Source: Guillardia theta CCMP2712
Taxonomy: Eukaryota; Protista; Cryptophyta
Length of the DNA stretch: 64,000 nt
Assembly (NCBI RefSeq): GCF_000315625.1
Contig: NW_005434630.1
Location: 310,001 to 374,000, forward strand
Reading direction: 5' to 3'
Below, one piece after another: positions 2,802 to 54,310 of the stretch (the stretch's first letter is position 1; every line of letters begins with the position of its first letter). The position numbers were made by a program, and so were the translations under genes. The notes under the pieces are model-generated. The model searched no databases. It saw only the letters and a list, made by a program, of their open reading frames with translations, and had not been told where the DNA came from.

Positions 2802-2999
2802 AGCGCAAAGTTCAGACGGGTGCAACCAAGTTCCTGAAGTGAGGAGAACCTGTGAGGGAGACGACCGAGTTGTGAACTTTCTACATTACAAACTAGATTA
2901 TATGGCCGGTGTTTCAGACCCTTCTCCCTCTCCCTCCCTTTGTCTGTCCACTAGCGTTGGAGGCGGCGGAGCGCGTCTGATATCGACGTTGTAATGTTC

Positions 3000-4391
3000 C
3001 GCCAGCCTTCGTCCCCTGCACCAACACAATCTCAACATCGTCCAGCTTACACCTTCAACTCACTCCTCGTTTTCTTCGCTCCATCCGACATCGTGGGCAT
3101 CCGTGGGCGACTGGAACATGAAGGGGTTGGAGGGTCCACTCTCCTTCTCTGCTCCCAGCATCACAGCACACTCAAGGCAGCCCTTGCGACTGACCTGCCA
3201 GCATCTCGAAGCGGAGGGGCGTGTGTGCTGTGACATCTGAGACAAGGAGGACAACAGTGTCAACAGCAAGTACATGCAAGAGAGAAACTCCTTGCAGTCA
3301 GGACCTTCAGGTGCTCTTTCTCGATTCTCCGTCAAGACTTTGCTGTTCATGGAAGGTTCACAACAGATCCAGCATGCCAACGTTGCCTCCAACCTCAGGA
3401 CGACGAGCTGCCGTACCGCCATTATCAGGCACAGCATCCCCACAGTCAGGCCAAGAGCTGGAAAACATTCACATCACGAAGCACTGAGAGGGTCTTGCGT
3501 CTTGCCTAAGAGCATCATCTGCACCCAGCTGAAGGACCGCTCGAAGATCACCCTAAAGACCCTTCTCAGCTCGTTGCTCCCCAGCAGGAACATGTCACAC
3601 AACCTCTCCCGGTCTTCGGAGTAGAAACACCCGAAGAAAGAGCCCGGATGCGCATACTGCTGCAAGAACTTGTGCTTGCTCGCTAAAGAAACCAACAGTC
3701 TTTGTCAAAGGGTTGTTTTGAAATGAAGAGGAGCGCACCGAACGAAGGGTTCCCCTCGAACGTCATGTATGCTTTCCCGTGGAACTGCTCGCAATGATCG
3801 CTCGTGTTCCTAACAGGTCAATCAGATTCAACCAACGCGCTTTCAGGGTCACCTGTACTGAGCAAGGCAAGCTGCTGATGAAGGGAAGACGTATATGTCG
3901 ATCTGGTTGCAGTTGCCCAACGTGAGTCGCGAGTCAGGAGGGAGCAGGTCGAACCTGCGCTTGTGATAGAACTGGCGATTCATCTTTTGTTGGCCAAGTC
4001 TGCAAGAGACTTCCGAGGACGAGGCAGCTGGAATATCAGCCGATCACGCGAGAGAAGACAAACAGGAAGGCATCCGATCTCAGCTGAAAGCATCGCTACC
4101 TTGCCTCACGCATCTTCAACTGAGGTATCACGACAACACGCAGCCACCAGTCGGCGTAACCTTTGGGGAAAGGACATTAGCATGAACTCGACGATTGGTT
4201 GCAAGGACGAGGACGAGGACTAATGACGAGGGCAGGAAGACGAGTAGGACTGGAGGAGGCAGTGGTGGTAGAGTTGATCTTTCACCTCCTGTTGCCCCCA
4301 ATGTCATCGATGCCATGATCGTCCACCCAGCGACTCCTCCTGCGGCTCCTCGCCATGTCCTCCCTCCCGTACCCCTCGTCGCTACCGGCAT
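3000..4391 (-). CDS. Hypothetical multi-exon protein (boundaries uncertain)
   Basis: Exon-like open segments (IDIYVFPSSAACLAQYR, NTSDHCEQFHGKAYMTFEGNPSF, LLVSLASKHKFLQQYAHPGSFFGCFY) flanked by GT/AG; no family recognised. Confidence 0.4.
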
Positions 4392-4988
4392 GGCATTCCG
4401 GGTCAGACGAAACCGAGCCGGCCTCAGGAATACAGTGAAGAGTGCTCCTGATTGTCCTCGTACTGATTTTTAACTTAACTTTGAGTAAAGGGCAACAGAC
4501 TGGCAACTGAGGCTGGCAAACCGTGTGTAGGAAACCCGCCCCAGACCTCCCCAGCCCAAGTCAATCGGATCAGTGACCGGGCCTGGTAACCCGGGTGACC
4601 GGGCGTTCCGCGGCAGTGACTCTTTGAACTGCCCGCGGCCATCATCGGATTGCCACTCAATGGGCCCGTGCAGCACATTCAATGAAACTTGCCTCTCAGC
4701 TCAACCGGGCCGCCGAGTCTGCCGCGGCCGCGGCCGGCCGGGCCGGCGGCTGAGTACTACCGGCGTGACCGTGGCATTCAATCCGACTCGGATGATCAGT
4801 GATTGCGGGGGCGGGCCGGCCTGCGGCAAACGGTTGAGCCGTCAAATGATCCCATTTTGAAAAGTTACACAAGGGGGTGGGGATGTTCAAAGTACCGGTG
4901 CTATCAACAGGAATTTGGAGGGGTATGTTTATGCATTTGAATGGAAGTCACGGGTAGGTACAAGGGTCAGTGCTCCAGTGCTCATCAT

Positions 4989-6953
4989 CATGGCTCGGAA
5001 CGCAGCATCGGAGCTCAGAAGACATGAAGGTGAGGAGGAGGAGGAGGAGGAGGAGGAGGAGGAGGAGGAGGAGGACATGTTCAAGCTACCTGATCTGCAA
5101 GAGGCTCGCTCCCTTTGGCGGCTCAAAGTTTGAACAAGAATGCCGTAGGTATCTTAGATCTTCGGAATGTTGAAGAGAGCACTCAGAAGCTGAATGTTGC
5201 AAGGAAGCCGATCCCCAATGAGATCACTTCCTTCGCCTCGTCCAAGAACTTTGTTCTTTCGGCCCTTCAGGTTAGTTCGAGTTGCAAACTCAGGATCACA
5301 GGATTGGTATGACAGGTTGGAAGAAGATTGGAGGAGGTCGATCAACGAAGGTGGGAGGAGTTCCTGTGTAAAAGAAGGATCTGACGTAGAGCAGGATCTT
5401 GCAGTACATCAAGAGACTTGAGGAGGACATCGAGCAGCAGAAGGACGAAAGGGAGAAATTGCAGGAAGAGATCGAGTTAGCCTGCACGGGACTGGAGAAG
5501 GAATGCCTGACATTAAGGAATGAAGGTGAGCGCTGCGCATGCAAGTTACATGTTGCAGACGAGGCCATGTGACGATCTGTTCTCAGTCGCAAGTGCCATG
5601 AAGACCAACAAGGAGTTGCAGGATATCATAGAGAAGGAGAGGAAGAAGAATATGGGGCCATCCGAGAACATCATGAATGAGATGACGAGGTTGAAACAAG
5701 AGCTCGAACGACTCACGCTAGAGAAGCAAGCTGCTGATGAAAGGAACCGAGAGAATCAAGTGGAGATAAAGCGATTACAGGTGAGCATCGGAAGAGGTGG
5801 AGTATGTTGTGGTGATTTTCAAACGCAAGAATCTTTATACCGATGAGATCGAGAAATCAAGCAGCCTGAGGGCGAAACAACTGAGAGAGATTGAAGAGAC
5901 TTTCTCAGAGGCTGTTGCGGGATCGCAACTGCGGGTGGCCGAGCTGAAGGAGGTGAAATGACCTGCTTGTTTCGAGGCGTCAAACTTGTGATGATCATGT
6001 GCTGTTTGCAGCAAGAGAGCAAGTCGAATGAGAAGATCAAAGAGTTGATGTCCAACGTGCAAGATCTCAACTCGGAGCTGCAAGTTCGCCAAGCAACAAT
6101 CGAATTTCAGAAGAAGGTGCTGCGAAGGAATCTGTCAAGTTGTGTGATTATTTTTGAGTAGAGTATTGACAAGCTGAACGCGGAATTGGAGAACATGAAA
6201 GAAAGATTGCATCATGAGAATCTCGACCTGATGCGACGGTACGCAACAGCAATGGCCTTCTGTCACTAAAGTACGCAGAGCGGAATATGCAGAAGATTTG
6301 AATGTTTCCAAGGACCAAGAACTCTCAATGAAAAGAAAAGAAATAGAAACTGTGGGATTCCCACCTTCTGTTCTTGCTAGATGTGTAACGACTCTGTTAG
6401 ATCCTCCAAAGCAACGACCTGCAAGTTAGAAGTTTGAAGGCGGACCTGACAACTTGTCAGCAAAGAATTCTCGTATTGGAGTCCGAAATACAGCGAGCGA
6501 AGGAGGCAAATGAAAACTTGAACCTCCAGCTCACGGTCAGGCTGTTCTGAGCGATATGCTCTCTGACGAGGAGGATGTGTAGGAATGCAGGAGAGAGAAC
6601 GTGAACTTGCTGAACTCTCTGAACGAGGCTAGGCAGCAGCTAGCAGTAACAAGTTTTCATGCCTGGTTCTTGTAGTTCTGACTAGATTGATCGGCAGGAC
6701 GCAGAGAAACAGCTCAAGTTGCATGAGAATCACCTCGTTGCATCTGTACGAGAGGTGGAGGAAGAAGCCGAAGATGTAAGGATGCAAGTCACTTCTTTTC
6801 TACCTCCTCACCTCTGTTCACTGTCTAAACCATCGATCTGCCTTCCCGTTGCTACTCTGCTGATGCATCTCGCAGACTGCAAGACTTTTGGGTATAATCT
6901 CGAAATTCCAGCTCAAAGTTCAATCCAGCCGTGTACAAAATCTCACCGAATAA
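4989..6953 (+). CDS. Coiled-coil protein, multi-exon
   Basis: Heptad-rich E/K/L/Q exons (EQQKDEREKLQEEIE, EMTRLKQELERLTLEKQAADERNRENQVEIKRLQ) separated by ~50-nt introns. Confidence 0.65.
5032..5073 (+). repeat. (GAG)n microsatellite
   Basis: Perfect GAG run. Confidence 0.9.
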
Positions 6954-7231
6954 TTAAAAGAGACATGTCAGAAATCGCTCATGTTTCTCAATCTATTCTG
7001 CTCCATGCATTCTGTTGTAGCTCTTCGATTTCTCCTCCTCACAACTGAGGGACAGGAAGTCCGCAAGTCAGGGGGTGCGACTCACTTGTCATAATAGGAA
7101 GATACTTCATAAAATGTACCAACATGACTATACGGCTCTCGTCTTAGATAAACAATTCGCAAGCCAGGTTAAACACTTTCCTGAGAAACCTTGCAACATT
7201 CCCACCTCTCTCCTCGACATGATGTACAGCA

Positions 7232-7845
7232 TTAACATTGTGGTTTACAGTAGTCTTGATAAATGTGCTGGCAGTATGGGAACTTCTCACGAATCACATC
7301 CGCCTGGAGTCAAGCATCACCTACCCACTCCTCACAGCACTACTCCCTTTACCGTATTGCCATTGATCGGATTGCCGTGGTACCGGCTGGCTCTGTACCC
7401 AAGACCACTCGTGCATACCAAGAACTGATCATAGCAGCTGTCGAGGCAGACCTGGCATAAACGTTGAGTACAGACCCTTCCCTCCTGATCTCTTGCACCT
7501 TTCCCATGGCAAGCGACCGCGCTCTGGGCGCGAGGAAGAGCCCCTGGGTTGGGATCGACATGATGGGATTGAAGTCTTGACTTCCTAGCATCATCGCCTG
7601 GTTCTGCTCAAAGATTGCTCCATGTAAGATGGGCGCGATGGTCAAACATCATGAACATGCACAGCACCTGCAGAGTGAAATGAAGGTGGGGCTGGACTTG
7701 CTGAAGGAATTCTGCAAACATTCAAGTCAATTTCAAGATTGTTCTTTGAAGATCAAGTTCTACCAGAGTGCCTTGGCAAATGTCTGTGTATCAAGTACAA
7801 ACTAGTACACATCAAGCCGATAACACAAGCAGCGAATACATGCAT
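7232..7845 (-). CDS. Small secreted or signal-anchored protein with a Cys-rich C-terminus
   Basis: MHVFAACVIGLMCTSLYLIH leader; spliced C-terminus VCLDSCYDQFLVCTSG...ADVIREKFPYCQHIYQDYCKPQC*. Confidence 0.5.
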
Positions 7846-8254
7846 ACTGCAGCAATCACGTCAGGGTTGTTATCATTGCCCTCACTTGTTGAGAATTCAA
7901 AAGAAGAGTAAAGTGATGTCACAACCAGGGGAAACTTCCCTTCTCCCCCTGCCCCCCATCCTCTCAACTTCCCTTCTCCCACCCTGACCTCCATCCTCCT
8001 CCCCCTTTCTCTTCCTCGTCCTCCCTCATCCCTCTCCCCCTCCTCTCCCTCTCCCCCTTCTCTCCTTCACCTTCTCCTTCATCTTCTCCTTCTCTCCTTC
8101 ACCTTCACCTTCATCTTCTCCTTCTCTCCTTTATCTCTCTCACCTCTGCATTTTTCTCGGCATCTTGTCGCCTCTTCGCAAGTGAGGACGGTTACACACT
8201 CCGTTACATCAAAGGATTTACGGGCAGCGCTCGGCTCGACAGCTAGTAATCGTC

Positions 8255-10260
8255 ATGGCGGAGCTGCCGGCGGGAAGGAAAGCGACGATGAAGGCGCACG
8301 TTGGAGGGGTGAGGGAGAGGATAAGGAGCGAGAGAGATAATTCCATATCGTATCTCAAGTCCATGCTGCTCACTGTGATGGAAGAGATTCAAGCGCGGCC
8401 GATCATGCGGGCATGCAGGTTTTGTTCTTACTCGTGCTGTAGGTGTTGGCCGTTCGCTTCAACAAGGATGGCGCGTATTGCTTGACGTGTGGTCAAGATC
8501 GCGTCCTTAAGCTCTGGAATCCTTATAAGGAAGCGTGCATCAAGTCATACCTCGGGCACGGGCATGAGGTGGCCGGTCGGACGACTGGGATGTAGAGGCT
8601 GAAGATGCATGCAGGTGTACGACGTTGCAGTAGCCGATGACAACAGGTGAGAGAGAGAGAGCGAGATACAGAGAGGGAGAGGGAGAGGGAGAGGGAGAGG
8701 GAGAGGGAGAGGGAGAGGGAGGGAGGGAGGGAGGATCCTCATCATGCTGAGATGGTTCGCAGTCGATTGGCTTCCTGCGGTGGCGACAAGATGGTGTTCT
8801 ATTGGGTGTGTGAATCAAGATCCTGCGGTTGGTTGTTTTGACAAAGATACAAGGATGTAGCAAGTGGAAACATCATCCGAAAGTTCCGAGGACATGAGCT
8901 GAAAGTGAATGCAGTCTCGTTTGCGGGTGACTGTGCACAATGTCTGAATGTATTCGCTGAATCTCACCATTTTCTCCTCAACAGGCGAAGAATCCTCTGT
9001 GTTGATCTCAGCGAGTTACGACAAGACAGTGAGGATTTACGATTGCAGGCACGTCCGGAAGCTCCGGCGTTTCCTCTCTGAGCGTAATTCTCATGGCAGA
9101 TCTCGATCCCTGGATGCGATTCAGACTATGTCGGACTTCACGGACAGTGTGACATCGCTTGCTGTGCGGGAGCATGAGGTACGTCAGGAGCCCTGCCCCG
9201 CTCGACTCTGAAAGAAAGTTGAGATATGCACGGGGTGCGTCGATGGATGGATCAGGATCTACGACATTCGTGAGCGAGGAGCAGCAGCGGGTCTGCAACT
9301 CTGTGACTGCCGGCAGGTCATGGGGAGATGATCTCGGACTGTGTGGGGGAGGCGGTGACGTGCGTGAGGTGAGCTCGTGGAGAGAAGACGATACGTTGAG
9401 GTGTAGTTGATGGCCCTCCGTGTTGACTTGTCTGCAGGTTCACCTACGATGGGAATTGTGTTCTGTGTACTTGTATGGACAACAAGGTGATAGTTGTCGC
9501 TACTATCCAGCCCCTCCCCTCACCACTCCTCGCTCCAGGTTCGTCTCTTCGACAAGTCGAACGGGGAATTGCTCAACACTTACACTGGGCACAAGAATGA
9601 TTCGTACAAGGTGAGATGTGTACGCGTTGACATGGTTGGAAGTTTTTGTTCCTTGACGTCTGAGAGTTTGAAGCGCAAGCATGCTGAACAACCAGTTGTT
9701 GTGGTGAGAGCCACAGTCACACGTGTACAGGTGGAGGCTTGTATGACAAGAGGAGATTCCCATGTCGTCTGCGGTTCGGAGAAAGGTGAGGAGGTCAGGA
9801 GGGTGCTGTTCCGTGACAAAAGGTGCAGGGGACATCTTCTTCTGGGATCTTGTGAGTGGCAAGGAAGTGCACAAGTTGTCAGGGCACAGCAACGTTGTAA
9901 GTTCCATGAAGATCTGAAGACGTTTTGCATGTGGAATGTTGAGAGAGTTGAGGTGTGAGAAGGTGTGATAGTGTGATGTTTCAAAGTGCCGAGATATGTT
10001 GATGTGTCAAGTTGTTGTCTGTGCCTCCTCGAGGGATCTGATCTGATCTGATCTGATCTGATCTGATCTGATATGATATGGTATGATACGTTGTCTGACG
10101 AGACATGCAGGTTTGCTCGCTCGCATACCATCCGTCGGATACTTACCTGCTGTCCGCGTCGGTGGATGGGACGGTCAGAGTTTGTGCGAACCTGCTCCAG
10201 CTCACAGTCCAGCAGGTTTCTCTATGGCAGTGAATGGGGTGAGGGCAGCAAAGAGGGCAG
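8255..10260 (+). CDS. WDR83: WD40-repeat protein WDR83/MORG1, multi-exon (3' end approximate)
   Basis: VLAVRFNKDGAYCLTCGQDRVLKLWNP, GHGHEVYDVAVADDNSRLASCGGDK, RKFRGHELKVNAV, VRLFDKSNGELLNTYTGHKN, DSHVVCGSE. Confidence 0.92.
10034..10075 (+). repeat. (GATCT)n pentamer tandem repeat in a WDR83 intron
   Basis: gatctgatctgatct... about 8 copies. Confidence 0.85.
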
Positions 10261-32599: not shown

Positions 32600-34977
32600 G
32601 GTCTTTCTTCCTGGTCTTGCCCCGAGCATTCGCCTCCTTGTTCCTCCCGTCGAATGTGAGAAGCAAGTGAGAGTAGAAATCCAACATGAACAAGATCACA
32701 AGATTTTGGGAGCTGTTCATAGGATCTGCCATTAACATCCCTGCGACCAACATGAATAACATTGCAGAGGTCGGAAGCATGAACTTCAATCAATCTAACA
32801 AGTGCTGCTGACTTTATTAATTCTTCGATTGGAAAAGTACAAGACTGCAACAGCTGAGAAACATGACCGAGAGGGATCTCGGGATAGGCTGCAGTGAAAA
32901 TGTGTAGAAAGCACGGAGGTGGAGGAGAAGAGGCAACTTGATGAGAATGAGAGTAACGGCAAGGGGGAAATTCTAGGAGGAAAGAGGAGTGGGGAACTGG
33001 AGGAGAAGAATGTAGCGGGGTATGGACGGGAGGAGGGAGGCTGGAGAGAGGGAGAAGGGAAAGATAGCAGGGGAAAGAGGGAGATATAAACGGAGAGGAA
33101 CAAGAAGAGAAGATGAGCAAGGAGAGTTGCATCGCAGGTTCGTGCTCGTGACGTCTCAGGTCTTGGTTTCCGCCACATGCCGAGCAAGCAGGTGCAGAAT
33201 CAAATCATCCCTTTCCAGCTTGATCCTCGGCTTGCCTGCAAGAGGAGATATACACTCAGAATGGTTGTATACTGAACTCTCCTCTCCTCTCCTCTCCTCT
33301 CCTCTCCTCTCCTCTCCTCTCCTCTCCTCTCCTCTCCTCTCCTCTCCTCTTCTCTTCTCTCCTCTCCTCTCCCCTCCTCTCCCTGCTCTTCCTGCTCTCC
33401 TCGTACCAGCTCCGAACGTTCGCAAGCAGCTTCCGCGATCGTTGATGAGAACGAAGGAGCCGTCAGGTAGCAGCCACATCCTGTTGTGCTCCTCACTCAT
33501 GTGAGACAAGCACATCATCATCGTCCTCCTTGAAGCGCAGCAGCAGCGCTGTACGTCTGTTCATCGGCATGAGTAGGATACGTGGGGCCCTTACCTCTTT
33601 CTTCCCTTCCTCCCCCTCCCTCCTTCCTCCTCACCTCCCCCTCCCTCCTTCCTCCTCTCCTCTCACTCCCTCCCTCATCCTCTCCTCTCCTTACCTTCTT
33701 CCTCCTTCTGGCCTCCGTACTCACGACGAGGACAGAGCCATTGTAGCCTCCACATGCCGAGCTCCTGGCAGCTGTGGGCAGTAGCAAGTCAGCAGGGCGG
33801 CAAGACTGCAAGGAGCCCCCACCTTTCAAGCTCGTGGAACCGGACGAGGTCTTGCTCTACCCCCAGCTGCTCGAGCAGCTTCTCCCTTGCGATCTTCATG
33901 CTGTTCTCCATGGTGATGAGCGACACCTGGACCTCAGCAAGGAGCTTCGTCTCCTCGGAGAGCTTCACTGCTCCCTCCCCCTGCGCGAGCTCCGGACGCC
34001 CTCCCTCCGCTGCCCCCCAGAAGTCGAGGGACTTCCGGAAGTCGGCGATGTAGTCCGGCAGTGTGACCTGCCTCCTCCCCCTCCTCCTGTTCTCCTCCTC
34101 GAAGTCTTGCTCCTCTCGCTCCCTCAGGTTCTGCGCTATCAACGAGTGCCTGCTTTATCTCTCAGCAGCAACCGTCGTCGCCTCTCCTCTCCTCCACCTC
34201 AGGAGCTCGACCGGCCCCTCGCTGAACATGCCTCTTGCCGCCCCATCCTCTCCCGACAGCATGATCCACTCCATCCTCCCATCTCCCTGCAGAGCCCATG
34301 AGCCGAGGAGCAGAGATCTTCCTCCTGTACCATCTGGACGCGCAGGATCGGAAGCTCCCCTTCCTCTTTAAACTGCCCATGACGAGTCAGCGCGAGGAAG
34401 AGGGGGAGGGAGAGCGCAAGCCTGCATGGCGGCCCCACACGTGTGGACCAGGTTGACCAGTGCCCTCTCCTCCCCGAACTTTGTCTCACGGGAGCACGAA
34501 AACCCCCAATTGCGATAGCTTGCTGCAGATAGGCGCCTGGCGGCCTCCTGTAAGAACGAGATCAGTCCCTTCCGTCTCAGGCTCCTCCAATCCCCACCTT
34601 GAGCATGTCCTGCTCCTCCTTGATCATACTCTCGACCTCCTTCTCCGCCTTCTTCTCCGCAAGGCCCTTCCCAAGCAGCCGAAGCGCCTGCATCGCAAGC
34701 GAAGTGTTCAACGGAAAGTCAACCTAGTCAAGTTCTGACAAGAAAAATTGACCAGAACAAAGTGAAGGCAGGCACAAGGCAAGCGGGCAGCGAGAGAAGG
34801 GAAGCGAAGGGGAGAGGAGAGGAGAGGAGAGGAGAGGAGAGGAGAGGAGGGAGGAGGGAGGAGGGAGGAGGGAGGCGTACAAGACTGGTACTTTATGAAA
34901 GAAGAGTGTAGCAACTGCACGAAAACATCTGAGACTGAGAGAATTGGAAGGGGAACAATCCTGTTGGCCCCAGCCAT
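32600..34977 (-). CDS. Hypothetical multi-exon protein with coiled-coil segments (boundaries uncertain)
   Basis: Exons AMQALRLLGKGLAEKKAEKEVESMIKEEQDMLK, IAQNLREREEQDFEEE..KLSEETKLLAEVQVSLITMENSMK; introns filled with (GAGGA)n. Confidence 0.45.
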
Positions 34978-35020
34978 TTCTGTTGTAGCTAGAAGGTAAA
35001 CCTCCAACGCAGTCTAGCTA

Positions 35021-36367
35021 CAAGGCTTGATCATATGCCGCTAGCTTAATGGCTCCAACACGCGGCACGCAGCTCCTGTCTCGGCAACCAGAAGACCTGC
35101 CTTCTCATTCGTGTAGCATCATTTCATGTATCGCAGCAAGCCGCGTCCTTGCTCGAGCTGCCGGGCTCTCGTCCTACATCATCAGTGCGAGCGGCACCTC
35201 GTCCTTGCCTCCACAGGCAGCCTCAGCTTGCTCAGCTCCTGCACCATATCAGCTCTCCCCCGCTACCGCCAGTCGCAAGGCTCTTCACCTGTGGATTGGT
35301 TGTTTCCGAAGTTGGACGCCGCGAGCGGCTCGACGCTCTCACTCGCTGCGTTCTTGGCCTCTCCCCAATATCGCTTGCTGAGAAGCTCGATGAACATTCT
35401 CTCCGGGCACAAGAAACAAGAGCACAATAAACATAAGAAGCGGTCGGAGCAGGCGAGGATTCCTACAGCCGAGTCGATTTTCTGACATTGACATTCATCG
35501 GTGCCATAGCAGCACAGACACTTTCCATTGTTCTTCCAGCAGATCTGGTCGTCGTCCAAGGGAAACTCCAGCCTGCATTCGCTCTGATATCGTGCGCAGC
35601 AGCACTTTCCCGCAGAGCCTTGCCCGACCTCCCCGCGCTCTTTCCTCAAGAAACAGGTACGATCGTCGATGCAATACGATCCGTCGTCTGCACAGAGTTT
35701 CTCGCAGTAGCATGCGCCTTCACTTGTTGTACAACAGAACTTCCCAAGGTTCTTGCAGCAGAGCCCACCATCTCCCAAGAATGGCCCCAACGCCCAAGTG
35801 TTGTATCTTACACAGCAGCAATACGGGCATTGCCTATCTTGACAGTTCCAGCATGCAACAGAGTTATCCTCTCCCTTCTCCCATGAGTCGTAAGGTACGT
35901 ATGCGCATCCATCGCACAGCAAGTAGCAAAGCCAGTCGGTCTTCCAGTCCGCAGGGTTCTTGAGAACGGAAAAGCTCTGCCAAGGTCTTCACTTCAGTTG
36001 AGGAATGGTAGATCTACAGGTCATGGAGTAGGTCTGATCTATGCTCAAAGAAAGAGTGATGCAGCGTTCGTCGAGCTCTTCCTTGTACTGCCTTGGTGCA
36101 ATCAACACCCAAGCGTTCTCTTGCTTTCTCGGTCTTACTCTCCTCGCTTTCTCGTTGCTAATGTCGCAGCTGTACTGTTCTCTAGGCGTCTACATGCACT
36201 CACTCTCCTCCTGGGCTCTCTCATATCTGGGGATCACGATCTCTCTCGTCGCTTCGCTGCTTCATCCTGCTCTCATCCCCGCGCTCTTTCCTTCCTCTCA
36301 TGCCCTCACCGTGTTCGCCTTGGCCATCCGGATGTTCCGATCCAGCTCGCTCCCACTACCCCCACCC
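35021..36367. repeat. Outer inverted-repeat arm A (pairs with 40420-41757)
   Basis: caaggcttgatcatatgccgctagctt at 35021 is the reverse complement of ...aagctagcggcatatgatcaagccttg ending 41757; near identity throughout, with a few SNPs and one 9-bp indel. Confidence 0.97.
35263..36327 (-). CDS. Cys-rich repeat protein A, copy 1 (~243 aa; exon 1 MAKANT, ~330-nt intron, exon 2)
   Basis: ATGGCCAAGGCGAACACG|gtgagg...ttggcag|AGCTTTTCC splices in phase into the 219-aa ORF; about 34 Cys with CCC/CLCC motifs. Confidence 0.8.
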
Positions 36368-36522
36368 TCCCCACCCAACCTGTCACATGATTCCCAGTAG
36401 TAACTTATCTTGGCCAGCGGCCCTTTGGCCCCCCCCTGACTCCACCCCTGGTCTTTAATGGATATTCGGGGTCGGAGTAGGGGGTGGGGGTAGTCTGGGG
36501 TGAGAGGGTTGAGGTTGCGACA

Positions 36523-37548
36523 ATGGCGGTAAGTGGGAGTATAGATCGGGAGGGATGGGTAGGGGCAGCCGTGAAGACAGGAAAGAAAGAGAAAATGCTT
36601 TGTTTAGGAGCGGGCAGAGTCTGATGATGTGCAATGTATGTTGTGGATGTGCAATGTATGTTGTGATCGTTACCATGCACAGAGAAAGAGCGAGAAAAGC
36701 GTTTCTGTTTCTTTGGAAAGGGGGGCAAAGAGAAGATTGGGAGGGTGAGAGAGAAGTTGGACGTAGTCGAAGAGAGTTTCCTTTGGCATGTTGCATGCCA
36801 TCATCCTGATGACCTGCTATCAAAACAGGAGCAAGACCACAAAGAAATCGCGGATTGGGATGTCTGGTGGCTGTGTCATACGTTCTTAGCAGGGATCGCG
36901 GTTTCCCCATATGACTCTTGGGAGCAATCGCACGAGCTGCAGGAGGCCAAGCAGTACGCCACGTCGATCGAGAAGTGTCTTTGCCTCAAGCGTGCAGGAT
37001 ACTGCGAGCTAGGACATGCTATGAAAAAGGATGGACTGTTCTGCAATGCGAGATCCAAATGCTGTTGTCGCCATGGACAGAATCAGTGTTTCCTTGAAGA
37101 CGCGTTTGACACAGACGGCGTGTGTTGGTTGGACGGGCGGAGGGCCTTCTTGCGTATGAAAGAAAAGGAGGCAGGGTGCAACTCCACGTGTAAGTGCTGC
37201 TGCTTGAGGTACAAGTTCGAGGACCGTCTCGAGAAGCCTTGTGAAGAGGGGAAAGTTTTCTGCTTGAACTCGTGCAGGTTCTTTCCTTTGATCTGTGAAG
37301 ACAAGACTGAGCTTGAGGGGATGTCCGGGGAGCATGGCTTCGTATCGTGCATCGAGCGAATATTTTTCCTGGGAGGATCTTGCAGTCTTGTTCCGAAGAA
37401 GTTTTTTGTCGAGTGCTGCGGATCTCGCGTGATGGGATCGCCGAAAGAGGCTCAAGCGCTCCCTCAGCATGAGGCGCATGCTACCGTTGCCTTCAGCGGG
37501 GCGTCATTCGGACATGCTGGCAATCGCGCCATGGAAGGTGAGATCTGA
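36523..37548 (+). CDS. Cys-rich repeat protein B, copy 1 (~241 aa; 6-nt exon 1 MA, intron 36529-36828)
   Basis: ATGGCG|gtaagt...aaaacag|GAGCAAGAC splices in phase to MAEQDHKEIADWDVWWLC...; the same micro-exon and donor are present in copy 2. Confidence 0.8.
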
Positions 37549-37731
37549 CTCGGCCCGGATGTTCCACGACTAACTGACAGTGACGTCGGCTGGCTGACCG
37601 GACTGAGTCTCGCTGTGACAGGAGGAAGAGCCTGTGGGCAAGACCTGGAGGAGGACGAGGATACACCGGCACGAACAACGCATGGGCGAGAGGCGATCCT
37701 AGAGGCGATCCCAACAGCCTTGACGATGTAA
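36772..37731. repeat. Inner inverted-repeat arm B (pairs with 38802-39767)
   Basis: gagagtttcctttggcatg...cttgacgatgtaa is matched in reverse complement by 38802-39767. Confidence 0.97.
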
Positions 37732-37736
37732 ATGTT

Positions 37737-37799
37737 CTCGGACTCGGACTCGGACTCGGACTCGGCCCGGACTCGGACTCGGCCTGGACTCGGACTCGG
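37737..37799 (+). repeat. (CTCGGA)n hexamer tandem repeat at the left edge of the palindrome core
   Basis: ctcggactcggactcgga... about 10 imperfect copies. Confidence 0.85.
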
Positions 37800-37936
37800 T
37801 ATCGTCCGACGGTCCTGCCGGGCCCGGCCGCGCGGCAGCCGCCGCGGCCTTCAGTGATGTCCCTGTGACCACAATGCAAGTTGACCTCAGAAGTTCTACT
37901 AGCGCAAGGGAAGGGGCAGGTCCATTTTAGGCTACA

Positions 37937-38662
37937 ATGACTTTGTTGGTATCCTACGTGAGGTGGGGCACCAATTTCCTACGAGGGGAACACCCGACAT
38001 GGCTGCAGCAAGTGCGATGTAGACAGGGCGACATGAGGGAAGCTGAGGCCGAAGGAGCAAGCAAGTCTGTTCGACTGGGACGTCCCAGACTTACTATCTC
38101 ATCCTCCTCGCACGAACTGATACCATTCAGGGTCCCATGGTCTGTCTTTCCCCACGCTGCGACGCCCAAATCACATCGCAGCGGCACAAGGGTGCAAGAA
38201 TGCACGAGGTCAGCCGGCAACATCGCTGCCATGGAGACATGCTCCCAGCATGGACTTGTATGTCATCACTGGGACGTCCCAGGGGGGCTGCTGGAGGAGG
38301 CTCAATTGATTGAGTGCAGTGAAGAGATTTACACACATTTGCTCGGGTATGCCAGGCTTAGCGCTCTCGCTGATCTTATGTCAACACTGCAGCAGGACAT
38401 CGACGTCTGGATTCGATCGTCGCGGCTGGTGGAGTAACCTCCCATGTTACCCAGCACCTCCTCTGCGAGGACAGCTCGAAGTCAATCTGGGGGTTCCTGT
38501 CTGCAGGCTGAATGGTGTTCAAATTGGGTACCCACAGTTGAAGGGCTTGTCAGGAAAAATGCCAGAGAGCTTTCCGAGAAGCCTACGGATCTGGAGTTCT
38601 TCATTGCCGTGACTAACTACCACAGGATCGTAGGGTATTATCTGCTCTTAGGATATGGATGA
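37937..38662 (+). other. Possible gene or gene remnant in the unique core of the palindrome
   Basis: 166-aa and 72-aa plus-strand ORFs with plausible GT-AG sites; no family recognised and I could not build a consistent spliced model. Confidence 0.3.
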
Positions 38663-38801
38663 GTTGCGCATTGTGTCAAAGTTTCAGCAGTTGTAAATCA
38701 TAAAAATTGCAAGTTTCAACGTCTAAATGAATCAGCCGCAGTCCATGAGTAAGAATAGATCTAATTCTTGCTATCGAAAGCAATCCCAGCAAAGCAGTCT
38801 A

Positions 38802-39767
38802 TTACATCGTCAAGGCTGTTGGGATCGCCTCTCGCCCATGCGTTGTTCGTGCCGGTGTATCCTCGTCCTCCTCCAGGTCTTGCCCACAGGCTCTTCCTCC
38901 TGTCACAGCGAGACTCAGTCAGCCAGCCGACGTTCTGTCAGTTAGTCGTGGAACATCCGGGCCGAGTCAGATCTCACCTTCCATGGCGCGATTGCCAGCA
39001 TGTCCGAATGACGCCCCGCCAAAAGTCACTGTGGCGTTGGCCTCAGGCTGAGCCTCAGGCTGAGGTTCGTTCTGAGGGAGCGCTTGAGCCTCTTTCGGCG
39101 ATCCCATCACGCGAGATCCGCAGCACTCGACAAAAAACTTCTTCGGAACAAGACTGCAAGTGCCAAGAATGCAAAGAGATCGCTCGATACACGATACGAA
39201 GCCATGCTCCCCGGACATCCCCTCAAGCTCAGTCTTGTCTTCACAGATCAAAGGAAAGAACCTGAACGAGTTCAAGCAGAAAACTTTCCCCTCTTCACAA
39301 GGCTTCTCGAGACGGTCCTCGAACTTGTACCTCAAGCAGCAGCACTTACACGTGGAGTTGCACCCTGCCTCCTTTTCTTTCATACGCAAGAAGGCCCTCC
39401 GCCCGTCCAACCAACACACGCCGTCTGTGTCAAACGCGTCTTCAAGGAAACACTGATTCTGTCCATGGCGACAACAGCATTTGGATCTCGCATTGCAGAA
39501 CAGTCCATCCTTTTTCATAGCATGTCCTAGCTCGCAGTATCCTGCACGCTTGAGGCAAAGACACTTCTCGATCGACGTGGCGTACTGCTTGGCCTCCTGC
39601 AGCTCGTGCGATTGCTCCCAAGAGTCATATGGGGAAACCGCGATCCCTGCTAAGAACGTATGACACAGCCACCAGACATCCCAATCCGCGATTTCTTTGT
39701 GGTCTTGCTCCTGTTTTGATAGCAGGTCATCAGGATGATGGCATGCAACATGCCAAAGGAAACTCTC
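38802..39767. repeat. Inner inverted-repeat arm B'
   Basis: Reverse complement of 36772-37731. Confidence 0.97.
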
Positions 39768-39976
39768 GTTCAAAGCGCCTTCCATTCCTTCCACCAGCCT
39801 CCCAATCTTCTCCGATTCCTTCCTCTACTTTCTTTCGACAATTTGCTTCAAATTTCCTGGTTCTTCATGCATGTATGGTACGATCACAAGATAGTCACAT
39901 CGTCACTCTGTTCTTTCTTTCCCTCTTCCCTTGTCTTTTCCTTCCATTCGCACATTCACCTCTTACTTACCGCCAT
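38967..39976 (-). CDS. Cys-rich repeat protein B, copy 2 (~249 aa; intron 39711-39970)
   Basis: Same structure as copy 1; differs in C-terminal patches and an 8-aa PQPEAQPE insertion. Confidence 0.8.
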
Positions 39977-40419
39977 GGCTCCAAAAAAACCAGCTGGATC
40001 TGCGATCACCCTACCCCCCATTTCATCAGCACCCCACCCCAGAAATTCGCTTCTTGACCTTTTTTTTTTGGTTCGAAATAAGACCCCCAACCTCCTCACT
40101 TACTTGAGGAATGACGGGTACTCAGTGGATTTTAAATTGGCTCGAGGAGTCAGCTGGGCAAAGGGGTGGGTATTGTTTACTTTCACGAAAGGGGTGGGTA
40201 CCGATTTCAGCGGGTGGTAGGGGTGGCCAAGCGGGAACAATACCTGTAAGTAGGTCGTAATTCACTTTCAGCACCTCGATGTCTGAAATCGGATGAAGTA
40301 GGGGTGGTAAAGGCCTAATGGCGGAAGGGGATAGAGGGGTAGGGGTTATCTGATTGCATTAATTAGAGGGGTGGGTTACATGGCTACAACGCGGAGCGTG
40401 CTACTTTCTGACACAAGGG

Positions 40420-41757
40420 GGGTGGGGGTAGTGGGAGCGAGCTGGATCGGAACCTCCGGATGGCCAAGGCGAACACGGTGAGGGCATGAGAGGAAGGAAA
40501 GAGCGCGGGGATGAGAGCAGGATGAAGCAGCGAAGCGACGAGAGAGATCGTGATCCCCAGATATGAGAGAGCCCAGGAGGAGAGTGAGTGCGTGTAGACG
40601 CCTAGAGAACAGTACAGCAAAAACGAGAAAGCGAGGAGAGTAAGACCGAGAAAGCAAGAGAACGCTTGGGTGTTGATTGCACCAAGGCAGTACAAGGAAG
40701 AGCTCGACGAACGCTGCATCACTCTTTCTTTGAGCATAGATCAGACCTACTCCATGACCTGTAGATGTACCATTCCTCAACTGATGTGAAGACCTTGGCA
40801 GAGCTTTTCCGTTCTCAAGAACCCTGCGGACTGGAAGACCGACTGGCTTTGCTACTTGCTGTGCGATGGATGCGCATACGTACCTTACGACTCATGGGAG
40901 AAGGGAGAGGATAACTCTGTTGCATGCTGGAACTGTCAAGATAGGCAATGCCCGTATTGCTGCTGTGTAAGATACAACACTTGGGCGTTGGGGCCATTCT
41001 TGGGAGATGGTGGGCTCTGCTGCAAGAACCTGGGGAAGTTCTGTTGTACAACAAGTGAAGGCGCATGCTACTGCGAGAAACTCTGTGCAGACGACGGATC
41101 GTATTGCATCGACGATCGTACCTGTTTCTTGAGGAAAGAGCGCGGGGAGGTCGGGCAAGGCTCTGCGGGAAAGTGCTGCTGCGCACGATATCAGAGCGAA
41201 TGCAGGCTGGAGTTTCCCTTGGACGACGACCAGATCTGCTGGAAGAACAATGGAAAGTGTCTGTGCTGCTATGGCACCGATGAATGTCAATGTCAGAAAA
41301 TCGACTCGGCTGTAGGAATCCTCGCCTGCTCCGACCGCTTCTTATGTTTATTGTGCTCTTGTTTCTTGTGCCCGGAGAGAATGTTCATCGAGCTTCTCAG
41401 CAAGCGATATTGGGGAGAGGCCAAGAACGCAGCGAGTGAGAGCGTCGAGCCGCTCGCGGCGTCCAACTTCGGAAACAACCAATCCACAGGTGAAGAGCCT
41501 TGCGACTGGCGGTAGCGGGGGAGAGCTGATATGGTGCAGGAGCTGAGCAAGCTGAGGCTGCCTGTGGAGGCAAGGACGAGGTGCCGCTCGCACTGATGAT
41601 GTAGGACGAGAGCCCGGCAGCTCGAGCAAGGACGCGGCTTGCTGCGATACATGAAACGATTCTACACGAATGAGAAGGCAGGTCTTCTGGTTGCCGAGAC
41701 AGGAGCTGCGTGCCGCGTGTTGGAGCCATTAAGCTAGCGGCATATGATCAAGCCTTG
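40420..41757. repeat. Outer inverted-repeat arm A'
   Basis: Reverse complement of 35021-36367. Confidence 0.97.
40460..41515 (+). CDS. Cys-rich repeat protein A, copy 2 (exon 1 40460-40477, exon 2 40802-41515)
   Basis: The 219-aa ORF-track translation is identical to copy 1. Confidence 0.8.
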
Positions 41758-42033
41758 AACTTAGGAGAGAAGTTGTCTGCGAAACCCATACCAAGGAAAG
41801 TTTTTCCAATTACCATCATATTTTGCGAATGCATCTCACTCGAAAACTTCGCTCAGTGTTTCCCTATTGACCCCTTTAAATATCCACACTGTAGCTGACG
41901 AGGTCCTGATACCGTCAATAACCAATTCACAATTGACAGAAAGAAATACTCGTACAGTGAATTAAATGTTTCACAAACAACATGAGTTTCGGGGGGGTTT
42001 ATTGAAGATGACATGTACACAGCCAGATCTTCA

Positions 42034-43177
42034 TCATTTCTTTTTGGCTGGAGTTTTCTTGGCTGTTGGCTTTTTCGCTGCTCCTTTTTTTGCTGAGCTT
42101 CCTTTGGGTTTTGGCTTAGACTTTTGCTTGGGCTTCTTCTCCTTTCCTGCTGCCTCTGATTTTGCTTTCTTTCCCTACAGACAAGTAAGTTTTGTTGTGA
42201 CCTTTGTTTGCTACTGAAGAAAGAGAGACCTTCGGCTTCACTTCATCGTCGTCAAATTCGTTGTCATCCTCATCGGAAAGCTCAAGGTCGATGTTGTCGT
42301 CATGTGGGTTCGCGATGGGATGGACCTGCACACAGCAATCAAGTTCTGCGACATCAAGGAAAGTGGGAGGTGCAAACTGGTACCTTCACGAAATCGTTCA
42401 TCACCTAAGAGTGCCAAGAATCATGAGCATGCATCGTATTCACATCATGGCATGTTACCGACTCGATTTTGACTTCGGTAGCGCCCATATCCATGACCAT
42501 CATCGTACAGCAGGGGAGGATGGATCCTTCATAGAGCTGATAGAAGCCTCAGATGTGTTCATAATACACAAAGCAATGTGCACCTGCCCTTTCAGATCAA
42601 GTTCCATGCTTCTTTCCCCAGTCTTGATGGTTCCAATGACTCCAGAATCACCCTCGAAATCCAAGTTTTGGTCCTCGCACTGAACCACGAACATATTCTT
42701 GCAAACCCTTTTGATGTTTGGTACAAGAACAGGCACAGATTTGCTGAATCTGATCTTCGAGGTTTCAATCTTAGCTGTACCGGTCTTGACGTCACTCGTT
42801 TTCTCGTCTGCTTCCTCTGCAACAATCTTGTTTTGCAGAGACGAGGCTGCCTTTGCTGGACTTTTCTTGGCTGGCGATGATTCAGTCTTGAGCATCATCT
42901 TCTTGAATTCAGGACTCGCGTGTTTCTGCATCATCATCAAGAAGCGCTCTTCATCATCTTCTTCTTCTGGGGAGTCGTCCTTCACTTTCTTGGGACTTGC
43001 CTTCACCGTGCCTGGCGACTTTTCCTTGGTGGGCGTGACTCGTTTTCTGTTCGAGGGGGTCTCCTCCTCCTCGTTGCTCTCGTCGCTATCAAGGTTATAC
43101 ACGATCTTCTTCTCGTCTCCCCCTCTCCTGCGCTTCTCCACGTCGACCAGCGGCTCGTCGTCGGACGACTCGGCCAT
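42034..43177 (-). CDS. BIN4: BIN4/MIDGET-like topoisomerase VI accessory protein
   Basis: VPVLVP..FVVQCEDQNLDFEGDSGVIG..MELDLKG..LYEGSILPCCTMMVMDMGATEVKIESVMNDFV parallels the plant BIN4 core (LPLVL..LVECEG..DLSGDMGAVG..LDLKG..Y...I.P....VV..GQTEAKIEAIMNDFI); acidic then Lys-rich tail. Confidence 0.85.
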
Positions 43178-43873
43178 GGTCTGTTGAGGAGTGGATGGCG
43201 GGAAACTGGCAGGAAAGGCTAGCTCGTGTGCCCGGCCTCGCCCGAGCCTCCGGTGGAAAATTTGAGATTGTTTCAAACTCATTATTTTGTACCCTAACTC
43301 AAAACTTGCCCGATTGTCCATTTAGTGATCCCTCCTCGCAAAACTGTTCCATGCGATGAAGATATTCTTCAGTAATTTTGGAATTTTCAGAGTAATTTTC
43401 AAAATGTTTCTGTCATCCAATCTGAAACTTACAATGGATGGAGTAGGTCGTATCGAAATGGTGGGGTCAACCACTCTGAAGTAGGGGTGATTCTGGTATC
43501 ATCTAAGTGGGTAGGGGTAAAATCAAAGTTGATCGGAGGAGGGGTGGGGTGGGGCTGGCCGGTGGACCACCAAAACTAGGACTTGTCAGGGGTGGGTGAA
43601 GAAAGAGTAACATGGGGTAGTCAGAGTAGGGGTATTCTTCATAGCAACATTTCGACAAACAGCAGGGGTGTGACGCTTGAAAGATTGGGTAGGGGTGGGT
43701 ATTTGAATGCTGAACAAGGAGGATGGGTGGGGTAGAGCGTGAGTGAAGACTAGGGACCTCAAAGTTGAATGGCAGCAACGAAGAATGAAGGGGTCAAGGT
43801 AAGGGAGAGGAAGGCGGGAGGGGACGATGGAGAGGCAGAGGATCAAGACAGTGAACGAAGAAGATGTGAAGGG

Positions 43874-46800
43874 ATGGTTAGACAGAACGAACGATGCACA
43901 GAAGATGATGCAATCAGCTCAAGTGGAACGCGAGATGGGTCTTAATTGGGAGCCATGTCACTGAATAGTCAGAAAGCTGTTGAGAAAAATGTTTACGCTG
44001 TGTGTCGTTCCCTTCTAGCTCCAGAAACAGAATGATTGAGTGGTCTCAAAGTGAGAACTGAAGTTGTTGCTATACATTTTTGAGACTCTGGAATGAATTG
44101 CTCGATTTGTACTTCGAGATCTACTATGTAGAAGCGATTGAGGGAGAAGGTTGAAAGATAGGTTCTGTGATACGATCGTAGCTCGAGAATGATCCTAAAG
44201 AATTTTATCACAATCATCGAAACTGAATTCTTTCCCGTTTTCAGCAGACTGTCATTACGCACCAGAGCGGCTGCTCGTGGATTCTTGAAGAGTGGAGTTG
44301 ATGCTGAAGTCAAGGTACAGTAATGCTGTACCATCACCTTCTTCGTTCTATACCGCTCCTTGTACTTCCTTTTGCTGCTGCTGCTGCTGCTGCTGCTAGT
44401 CCTTATCATCCCTTCATTGATGTTGTTGCTCTTCCTCCAATATGCTGCTGGTCGTTGATGAGGTGTATCCATTGACTGTCCATCCAGAAAATCATCAGCC
44501 TCTTCAGGACTCTGACAGGTTTCCAAAGTCTCAACGTCATCTTCGCTATCGTTGGCCTTATCTTCGGCATCCGTGCCAACGAGCTCTGCACCAGGGGATA
44601 TCAACCGACAGAGGAGGAGATCGCGGACGGCTACCCTGATCCGTTCAGCAAGGATCCTTTAGGTTCTGAGTGCCAAGATGTGTATCTCGTCAAGACTGGT
44701 TGTACGATTTTCACAGTTTTTCTTCTCATATGCATGGTTTGGCAATTCCGATATCGGCTGGTCATCTCGAAGTTGAAACATAGCGCCCAGTCAATGCACG
44801 CTCAAGGGGAGTCGATTCGCTTCAACCGCGAGACAAGTGATAGGGAAGAAAGAGTGACGACGATGAACAGGCTTTTGAACTTCTGCGGTCTACATTGGAG
44901 GCTCCTCATATCTTTCGTTTTTGAGTTTGTGGCATGCATGATTCATCCCATTTCCGGGATATCAAGAGATTACAGGAATGAAATGATGGGGAGAGTGGTA
45001 TACTACAGGTTCGAAGCTGTTTGCGTCTCGGTTATGTTCATCCGGCTTTTTCATTTCCTGCGTCTCCTCTCATATTGGCTACAGTATTCGACGTACAAGA
45101 GGTACCTTACAGAAACGTGTGAGAACAAGGGGATGGTTTTCCTCCTCTTGCACGATCCCTCCATCCACCCCGGCTTGTTCATGTTCAAGGAGAACGCGGC
45201 GCAGAACCCTGAGCTATACCTTACTTCGTTCCTTTTCGTTGCAATCTTCTGTGGAGGCTACCTCATTCGCATTGCCGAGGTTGCTGCCAGCCTGGCTCAT
45301 GCAGCGTACGCATGGAACAATTTCTGGCTCGCCCTTCTTGCAATGACTACCTCATACTACGGCGACCTTGCTCCCATCACGCATTATGGAAGGTAGGCAG
45401 GCAGTCCCGTGCAGAAGGTCCTTCCCTGCTGATCCTTGCCCTCTGCAGGTTGATTTGTGCCATTCTGATGATGATCGGGCCGCTTCTTCTTCTTTATTGC
45501 ATTCAATTCCCCTTGGGGTTCTTGGGGAAGACCGAGCAAGAGCAGCGGGTGAAGAAGAGAATCGATGCGGAGATGATGAAGACGGCTCTGAGGACAGCTG
45601 CGGCTCGAGTGCTTCAGTTTCGATACAGGCAAGTGCACCTTCCAATGTTTGCTGGTGAAAGTCTCCATATTGCAACGTGGAAGGACGAGCATTCCTTTGT
45701 TCCATGATCTCTTTGAAGTGGAATTCTTACATCTTCTTTGCAGAGTCAGCCGAGGAAAATTGATAACATCAGGGGGGAGGCGAATTCTAACCCAAAAGCA
45801 GCTCAATGAGCACCAGTCAGCACTGCTTTTGGACCTAAAGAAAGCATCTAATCTCATGATCGACCACCAGTGGATATTCCCTCACTCAGACACGGTAAGA
45901 CTTCCGGAGCAAGGTGTTGGTTTGATTCTTCCTAGCAGAGGCACAAAATGAAAGAGAAGGAACGAGAGAAGCAGGTCCAAACTAAGAAATCAAGGGAGGA
46001 GATGAGCTCTGTCGAGCATCAAAGTCCCTTGTCAAGGTGCACGACGTGCAAGGACTGTCTGTCGATCTTCCACGAGATGAAATTTCTATTCCAAGACATC
46101 AAAGTGATTGGACGATTCTTGCTGATGTTCCTGTTCCATTGAAACATCAACTGCAGGAGGAAAACCGCGAGTCAGTCTCAGAGATCAGGGCACAGATGAC
46201 GGAGTTGAGGAATATGATGATGGAAACGAGGGACAAGGAGACTGATCTCCATGTGAGATTGCGATTGCGATGATTGTAAGTCCTCACTGAAGGACATGCA
46301 GCCAAAGGTATCGGAGGTTCATGTGCAGGACAACACACAGTGGTTGGAGCGAAAAGCTTCTTCCTCTTCGTACAAGAGCACCCTTGAGAAGTTCGAGGCT
46401 CTTGTTCCTTCCTTCGATAGCCTTGAAAAGCCATCTCGCAAGAACGACAAGGAGCCAGGTGGAGAAGCTGCATGCGGTAAAAGCTACCTCTGACTCACTC
46501 GCTACAGTGACGATAAGGAGGGAGGGAGTTGGGATCACGCTGACTGGGTATGAGATCTCCGAAGAAGAATGTGTCGCGATTTTCAACCAGCTGGATGCGT
46601 ACAAGCATGGAGTGAGAGGATGATCGTACGATCTCATAAGGAGCTGACATTTGCCCCAGCGCTTGACCAAGGATCAGGTGGAGCAAGGATTAATTGCGAT
46701 CCCCGAACTGAAGAAGAGGCTTGGAGACATCACATGCATGTTCACTGATAAGAATGGGGATGGGTACTATCCCTGCTTCTTCTTCGCGCATCTCAATCAA

Positions 46801-53272: not shown

Positions 53273-54310
53273 ATGGCAGGGCGAGTGGTGGACGACGCCT
53301 ATCTGCATGCGCTGCTGGACAAGGAGGAGGAAGGTAGGAGGAGAGGAGAGGAGAGGAGAGGAGAGGAGAGGAGAGGAGAGGAGAGGAGGAGGAGGGAGTT
53401 CAAGAGCAGGAAAGGGGAGGGGAGGGGGGAGGAAGAGCGGTGGAGGTGAGAGGGAAAGGAGATCGTGAANNNNNNNNNNNNNNNNNNNNNNNNNNNNNNN
53501 NNNNNNNNNNNNNNNNNNNNNNNNNNNNNNNNNNNNNNNNNNNNNNNNNNNNNNNNNNNNNNNNNNNNNATGGGAGGGGAGGGGAGGGGAGGGGAGGGGA
53601 GGGGAGGGGAGGGGAGGGGAGGGGAGGGGAGGGGAGGGGAGGGGAGAGGAGGGGAGGGGAGGGGAGGGGAGAGGAGAGGAGAGGAGAGGAGAGGAGAGGA
53701 GAGCAGAGCAGAGACAAGGAGAGGAGAGGAGAGGAGAGGAGAGGAGAGGAGGGGTGCATCAGGCTGTTCTAGAGCAGGAGAGGGGAGGGGAGGGGTGAGG
53801 AAGAGCGATGGAGGCGAGAGGGAAATGAGATCATTGAGGAGGAAGAGGAGGAGAGGGGGGAGGAGGAACAGGTGGCATGTGGTGGTGGAGGAGGCAAGAT
53901 CAGGCTAACCCGCGCCATGTCTCGTCGTGCTGATACCTGCTGTCATAGAACCGGACGTCGTCGTATGGACAAGGGAGCAAGTCATGGCTAACCTGCACAA
54001 GCCACTGAGAGACTATGCTCCTCGGGCGACTCCGAGACGCTCGCATGCTGCAGAGGAGGATCAGCAAGGTGGAAGCGAGAGGAGGAGCGAGCGAGTGAGA
54101 CTGGGGTTGCCGGTCCGAGCATCAACAGCTGGATCGGTGAAGGAGGCTCGATGGACGCTGAAGGTTCTTGAATGGAGGGGGAGGGACTGGCTCAGGACCA
54201 TGTCGCTGCTACTCGTGGCAGGCATTTCGCCCAAGTTGGTTTTCACCATCTACAGAGGATTCTTGAATCTCTCTGATGTGTTGGAGAAAACTTACAGGTA
54301 CACAGCATAA
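53273..54310 (+). CDS. Hypothetical protein, head-to-head with PIG-W; its intron contains the assembly gap
   Basis: MAGRVVDDAYLHALLDKEEE|gt..ag|EPDVVVWTREQVMANLHKPLRDY..VLEKTYRYTA*. Confidence 0.5.
53470..53569. other. Assembly gap (100 N) within (GAGGA/GGGGA)n microsatellite
   Basis: Run of n characters. Confidence 0.99.

Follow-up and report, generated by a model that had tools for sequence, protein, structure and literature searches.

In the methylotrophic yeasts Ogataea and Komagataella, recombination between inverted repeats flips a chromosomal segment, an induced process that moves MAT genes into or out of silencing chromatin. On chromosome XIV of Saccharomyces, the inverted repeat of the flip/flop region consists of two gene pairs whose family evolves fast and is poorly understood in function; within strains the repeats are homogenised, between strains and species they diverge, and the interior can be inverted by recombination (PMC9731477). 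The yeast arms measure 4 kb, the interior comprises 24 kb with 15 genes, and both orientations have been demonstrated in many strains (PMC9731477). The palindromes of the human Y chromosome, e.g., P6 (PMC3723533), and of the primate X chromosome (PMC8327919) carry genes on arms that surround a unique spacer, with arm identities above 99% maintained by gene conversion and with resolution as an inversion being rare (PMC3723533, PMC8327919). Here we analyse a nested, gene-bearing palindrome of 6.7 kb in the nuclear genome of the cryptophyte alga Guillardia theta CCMP2712 (assembly of 87.1 Mb in 669 contigs), located at positions 35021-41757 of a 64,000-nt stretch of contig NW_005434630.1, hereafter the window. 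Two paralogous genes, A and B, are each present in two inverted copies, in the order A<- B-> core <-B' A'->. The copies differ from each other in a mosaic pattern, and purifying selection acts on both genes. We consider it likely that an old inverted duplication of the A-B pair was later homogenised by non-allelic gene conversion.

The locus resembles the flip/flop region of yeast chromosome XIV in having two homogenised gene pairs in concerted evolution. Unlike that region, its interior is either a non-coding core of 1 kb or, counting the B genes and the spacers, a segment of 4 kb; each side has two homogenised islands split by an unconverted promoter spacer, and alternative orientations are only hinted at. 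With the palindromes of the Y and X chromosomes it shares the inverted gene-bearing arms and the unique spacer between them. Those palindromes, however, have uniformly homogenised arms of tens of kb to Mb on sex chromosomes, whereas the arms described here measure 1-1.35 kb, belong to a unicellular alga and show mosaic tracts with diverged promoters inside. The comparison with mating-type switching in methylotrophic yeasts fails on gene content, because there are no MAT genes at this locus, nor does it have a known context of silencing. Our results support its assignment to the gene-bearing palindromes under arm-to-arm conversion that are known from yeast and from sex chromosomes.

Structure and physical presence of the palindrome

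The layout was obtained by repeat search and by BLAST of the left half of the locus against the reverse complement of the right half. Together with identity in 100-nt sliding windows, these analyses bore out the original prediction of two pairs of inverted arms around a unique core of 1070 bp. The parts are the following:

35021..36371, minus strand: left A arm with gene A (GUITHDRAFT_110260, N-terminal 256-aa part); from repeat search, BLAST and the gene model read against the sequence
36372..36771, no strand: left spacer, with the intergenic region of A and B (195 nt, bidirectional promoter) and with exon 1 and the greater part of intron 1 of B; from sliding windows and alignment
36772..37731, plus strand: left B arm with gene B, comprising the end of intron 1, exon 2 and 3' sequence; from repeat search, BLAST and sliding windows
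37732..38801, no strand: unique core, towards which the 3' ends of B and B' converge; from Pfam, Rfam and tRNA scans and genome search
38075..38282, no strand: block at the core centre, two copies of CTGGGACGTCCCAG bracketing 180 nt; from repeat search
38802..39767, minus strand: right B arm with gene B' (GUITHDRAFT_153178, partial model); from repeat search, BLAST and omega against the relative
39768..40416, no strand: right spacer, with most of B' intron 1, B' exon 1 and the 484-nt A'/B' intergenic region; from alignment and the relative's contigs
40417..41757, plus strand: right A arm with gene A' (GUITHDRAFT_110264, 256 aa); from repeat search, BLAST and gene model

By BLAST, the A arms (35021-36371 / 41757-40417) match over 1351 nt at 98.7% identity and the B arms (36730-37699 / 39812-38822) over 1000 nt at 93.5%, the bounds of the latter in the repeat search being 36772-37731 and 38802-39767. 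In sliding windows, identity is 99-100% across most of A and across 36849-37348 of B, and falls to 15-50% in both spacers and in the core. The arms had been described as near-identical, including the untranslated regions and the A intron; this holds for A but not for B, where a 500-nt tract at 100% identity is accompanied by a few dense difference patches (37350-37378 and 37462-37495) and by indels at 37596-37600 and 37689-37700. The unique parts, i.e., the left spacer (36372-36771, 404 nt), the right spacer (39768-40416, about 650 nt, 652 nt in the original description) and the core (37732-38801, 1070 nt), are each single-copy in a search of the 87-Mb genome, and no further repeat of at least 150 nt was found within the 64-kb window besides the A and B arms. 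The spacers are heavily diverged and retain only islands, as predicted, and the islands named in that prediction are present and collinear: ATGGCGGTAAGT at 36523 (plus strand) and at 39976-39965 (minus strand), TTGTGATCG..TACCAT, and GAGAAGATTGGGAG.

A foldback-like mobile element with long terminal inverted repeats was considered and rejected: the arms occur only here, the spacers and the core are single-copy, and searches at the locus for a target-site duplication and for a transposase domain found neither, in agreement with the earlier reading of the sequence.

Near-identical arms are difficult to assemble, and the reference, a draft of 2012, contains a gap at another place in the window (53470-53569), both of which would suit the idea that two haplotypes or a collapsed repeat had been mis-joined as a palindrome. 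Four public runs were compared with 35860-41850. One of them, a DNA run of 2021 assembled into contigs at k=31 (X1), carries an organism label and belongs to a study that differ from those of the 2011 runs, which probably fed the reference assembly. The X1 contigs terminate exactly at every arm boundary, and their depths fall into two classes: single depth for the left spacer (51), the core (57 and 74), the right spacer (56) and the right flank (62), and double depth for the B arm (112) and the A arm (136). If the two sides were alleles, spacer depth would be halved, whereas spacers, core and right flank share a depth of 51-74 against 112-136 for the arms. Raw reads of DNA from a chromatin immunoprecipitation experiment (X20) cover the whole stretch evenly, and the variants that distinguish A from A' at 41032, 41657 and 41661 appear in them as mixtures. 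The double-depth arms and the contig breaks at arm edges therefore argue that the locus is no assembly artefact, and a mis-join is extremely improbable; the palindrome is physically present, independently of the reference assembly.

Guillardia-like DNA was also found in a 2023 run labelled 'freshwater metagenome' (X7), where two or more kinds occur (with identities of at least 99% and of 93-97%); G. theta is a marine alga. At 41657 and 41661 this run shows two variants of equal depth, in combinations absent from CCMP2712. Immediately to the left of the palindrome, a long CT-rich pentanucleotide microsatellite (CTCTC/CTCCT type, 33252-33410) is paired imperfectly, in inverted orientation, with its GA-rich complement (34768-34875) at a distance of about 1.4 kb. 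A scaffold gap of 100 N (53470-53569) lies well away from the palindrome.

Mosaic divergence of the two copies

The locus was compared with three ENA metagenome contigs (L007, L008 and L009, PRJEB17505) from a related Guillardia lineage, whose synonymous divergence from CCMP2712 is 0.065-0.09. This is the only related lineage in the comparison, and three sequences without an outgroup yield branch lengths, not rooted trees. Exact look-ups of two open reading frames of L008, aimed at further contigs of the relative, returned L008 alone, and a literature search on PRJEB17505 yielded no publication.

The coding sequence of A consists of exon 1 (36327-36310), intron 1 (36309-35977), exon 2 (35976-35289), intron 2 (35288-35239) and exon 3 (35238-35174), and the arm extends beyond it, by about 44 nt into the 5' leader and by 153 nt of 3' untranslated region at the other end. 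In a three-way alignment of 1344 columns of this arm, A and A' differ at 12, A and the relative at 77, and A' and the relative at 88. The original prediction, in which intrachromosomal recombination homogenises the arms of an old duplication, had implied that arms should be closer within a genome than between strains, and this is what we find; together with the mosaic pattern described below, it makes that part of the prediction well supported. The coding sequence of A' runs from about 40461 to 41604 and specifies a protein identical to that of A; a deletion has taken 12 nt from intron 1 of this copy, which also shows about 10 single-base differences, almost always in the derived state when compared with the related strain. 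Even in the columns of intron 1 (36272-35978), which are expected to be near neutral, about 5 differences separate the two copies and about 35 are specific to the relative (1.5% vs about 11%).

The B copies combine two opposite patterns. Exon 1 of B is only 6 nt long (ATGGCG, 36523-36528) and is followed by GTAAGT; intron 1 extends from 36529 to 36828, and exon 2 from 36829 to the stop codon of the reading frame at 37548, with a possible 5' splice site at 37540. The corresponding parts of B' are exon 1 at 39976-39971, intron 1 at 39970-39711 and exon 2 at 39710-38967. The B arm begins 57 nt before the acceptor site of intron 1, and earlier details of the gene structure had to be amended in part, as B exon 1 and most of intron 1 sit in the diverged spacer and not in the arm. 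Both contigs of the relative have an indel of 1 nt that makes 36775-36828 intronic, and an arm starting exactly at exon 2 was ruled out on this ground. Within the tract 36780-37329, none of the sites is unique to B, 1 is unique to B' and 17 are unique to the relative. In intron 1 and the patches (36743-36771, 37350-37378 and 37462-37495), by contrast, 109 sites are unique to B vs 12 to B', and intron 1 has diverged by about 45% between the two copies vs 15% from the relative (85% identity between strains). B' agrees with the relative at most of the sites that separate B from B'; at 37350-37378 and 37462-37495 and at the indels 37596-37600 and 37689-37700, B stands apart from B' and the relative alike. 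The relative's spacer is likewise of the right type (80-85% identical), its promoter being 80% identical between strains.

Divergence is thus mosaic, not uniform across arms and spacers. The intron of A and intron 1 of B, 200 nt apart, indicate opposite ages for the duplication, and therefore one date cannot give both, while conversion after the split of the strains can. The intron-1 parts of the two spacers are weakly but significantly similar (z = 3.8, a value reached by 0/300 shuffles); with the collinear islands, this indicates that the spacers are homologous but old. No alignable similarity was found between the intergenic (promoter) parts of the spacers (z = -0.1), nor any detectable kinship between the two halves of the core (z = 1.5).

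As the most probable course of events, an old inverted duplication would have copied a divergently transcribed pair of paralogs, A and B. Breaks in one arm would then have been repaired repeatedly with the other arm as template, through non-allelic gene conversion within the chromosome, which would keep A, with its leader, introns and 3' untranslated region, and most of B near-identical. The spacers with promoter and intron 1, a few patches of B and the core would have escaped conversion and diverged, and conversion tracts would end where homology had already decayed. An occasional crossover between arms would invert the interior. We infer both this mechanism of repair and the inversion of the interior by crossover as its consequence.

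Several observations weigh against this scenario. The branch lengths come from three sequences and lack the root that an outgroup would supply. The A/B intergenic parts of the spacers have no detectable homology, and one of them may have been replaced instead of having diverged. Of the spacers, the B copies and the sides of the core, the relative's contigs have the right-hand version only; they cross the arm boundaries without a break at any of them, and the related lineage could have a single A-B pair. Finally, gene conversion has been inferred and was not itself observed.

The same unbroken contigs are what a younger origin might predict. If the A-B pair had been copied only once the related strain had split off, the arms would be alike through youth, and the left spacer and the patches of B would have changed fast, whether through replacement, through indels or through a mutation process acting locally. 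The relative, with one type of spacer, one B gene and one side of the core, would then resemble the single-copy ancestor; this scaffold has frequent local duplications of young age besides this one, and the wholly unalignable intergenic parts of the spacers would fit as well. Yet intron 1 of B keeps collinear islands and a residual similarity at a divergence three-way comparison puts far above that between strains (about 45% vs 15%), the patches of B are dense clusters of in-frame substitutions and not indels, and the relative joins the left flank to a right-type spacer, which is not expected from a simple recent duplication. The equal-depth A-type variants of X7 at 41657 and 41661 hint, weakly, at two copies in another lineage. 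We therefore regard a young duplication with rapid local scrambling as unlikely.

One of the patches deserves separate mention. Over 29 nt, in frame, at 37350-37378 (vs 39189-39161), B differs from both B' and the related strain at 13 positions, and the change turns SLCILGT into IFFLGGS in B. The patch could be a relic that conversion passed over, or else the product of a complex mutation with clustered changes.

Possible inversion of the interior

With 99-100% identity over 1-1.35 kb, the inverted arms offer good substrates for recombination, and the original prediction had raised the possibility that a crossover between them turns the core around or re-pairs coding regions with the two different promoters. 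In an active flip-flop locus, inversion of the core or of everything between the arms would be frequent enough for both orientations to coexist. Two sets of observations hint at such events. The first is the contig L007, which has a right-type spacer upstream of A; downstream, an insert of 62 nt separates A from the left flank (34928-35013, 83% identical, a match that rests on BLAST within the window). A genome-wide search with the relative's 3' flank gave no hit, but its sensitivity is too low for a match of 87 nt at 83% identity. In CCMP2712, the left flank and the right-type spacer sit on opposite sides of the palindrome. This join hints at an inversion of the interior through a crossover in the A arm or, alternatively, at a chimeric metagenome contig formed through a collapsed repeat. 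The informative sites of L007 fit the left A copy, all except the innermost, and any crossover would therefore be confined to the last 35 nt of the arm.

The second set concerns the core. A perfect 14-nt palindrome, CTGGGACGTCCCAG, occurs there twice, at 38075-38088 and 38269-38282, 194 nt apart, and has 3 copies in the entire genome of 87 Mb; it contains a GACGTC core, presumably of the kind bound by bZIP factors. The B arms are symmetric about a point (about 38267-38270) at which the second copy sits. The block bracketed by the two copies, together with a 106-nt insert, is inverted in L008 (ERR2281809) with respect to L009 (ERR2281808) and the window, and the match of an X7 contig ends at 38085. 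Palindrome centres tend towards instability, and the strand switch between L008 and L009 and the end of the X7 match at 38085 therefore indicate that the core centre is structurally unstable in nature.

Against an active flip-flop, the DNA of CCMP2712 showed no orientation variant, although the 38-nt reads and k=31 contigs in which it was sought are too short to span a 1-kb arm. L007 could be chimeric, and if it is not, its crossover would need the last 35 nt of the arm. The proteins of A and A' are identical, so a swap would change little; RNA cover in the one raw-read run is near zero; and genes for mating type or regulation are absent from the locus, where Pfam recognises no domain in A, B or the open reading frame of the core. 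Taken together, coexisting orientations maintained by arm crossovers seem quite improbable. A role of the inversion as a regulatory switch is unlikely, and nothing points to regulated switching. Going further, the arms and the rare 14-nt palindromes might constitute a working invertible element that flips segments at appreciable frequency in populations or cultures, exchanging two bidirectional, mutually unrelated promoters between gene copies and between the two C-terminal variants of B. Such an element would be the counterpart, in a eukaryotic alga, of phase variation or of the flip/flop known from yeast, but we consider its existence very doubtful.

Gene family, related duplications and significance

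A and B, which share 29% identity (E = 4e-23), are paralogs of a small, orphan Cys-rich family that has six loci in the genome, namely the four described here and singletons on C14 (L003, C14:988600-992160) and C21 (L006, C21:831129-834692). The related strain holds orthologs of both singletons (P0008 at 89% and P0007 at 94%). A profile search of 1.8 billion proteins found 22 relatives only, all from MMETSP protist transcriptomes and from metagenomes, unnamed and lacking a Pfam domain. Pfam detected no domain in A, B, B', the core open reading frame, the downstream part of the fused gene model described below or the distant family members, two of which have a sub-threshold UVR motif. An AlphaFold2 model of A, built from a 17-sequence alignment, had a mean predicted local distance difference test score of 31 and was unusable; a feature search of the ESM Atlas returned only clusters of hypothetical proteins, below 0.9, and two scans of JGI metagenome contigs yielded no relatives of A or B'. 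With omega values against the related strain of 0.03 for A and 0.13 for B', both are working protein genes kept by purifying selection.

Public annotation of these genes is inconsistent: the left A is fused with a downstream gene as a 516-aa model, and the identical right copy is annotated with 256 aa. The model of B' is partial, with about 80 codons skipped, and protein searches returned no complete model of B.

B and B' are convergent, 1.07 kb apart, and their arms are complementary over about 1 kb, an arrangement in which read-through from B over the core into antisense B' might produce a long double-stranded RNA that feeds silencing of the family. Expression is very low under the condition of the one raw RNA run, with 6 reads only over 35860-41850, and this would suit a hairpin-RNA locus too. 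The strong purifying selection on both genes as proteins argues against it, and we find this function hardly credible. Scans of 33000-44000 with Rfam and for tRNAs gave no match, and a word-based search with the core open reading frame retrieved only the open reading frame of the window itself.

Other local duplications were found in a sample of the same scaffold (C44) consisting of 20 segments of 10 kb. A second gene-bearing palindrome, about 80 kb upstream (L024, C44:260001-270000; arms 2084-3850 / 5895-4147), has arms of 1.77 kb at 96.5% identity around a spacer of about 300 bp and carries convergent open reading frames of 568 and 517 aa with helical repeats. Direct repeats of 1.0 and 1.47 kb at 99.8% identity lie in L015 (C44:80001-90000; 3007-5744 / 5741-8478), and a triple tandem repeat at 84-90% in L011 (C44:1-10000; 1709-7782). 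Young local duplications are therefore frequent on the scaffold, with about four per 200 kb sampled, and gene-bearing palindromes are not rare in the G. theta genome. The palindrome in L024 is similar to the present locus in having near-identical, gene-bearing inverted copies at the kb scale, a few kb apart. The present locus differs from plain young duplications by its nesting of two gene pairs and by having old spacers beside homogenised genes.

A search of the literature on Guillardia palindromes, gene conversion and tandem paralogs returned only papers on organelles, and concerted evolution in a cryptophyte nuclear genome was not described in them. The locus represents a clean and small case of this process in such a genome, in which conversion tracts of about 1 kb homogenise whole transcription units and the intervening promoters diverge completely. 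Because conversion would act on the genes while their promoters diverge, two identical proteins come under two different control regions. If both orientations coexist, the locus would be a compact model for inverted-repeat inversion in an alga. Together with the other duplications of the scaffold, it suggests that non-allelic gene conversion and inverted duplication are common in this genome, which is relevant both to its annotation, with its collapsed or fused gene models, and to the dating of its paralogs.

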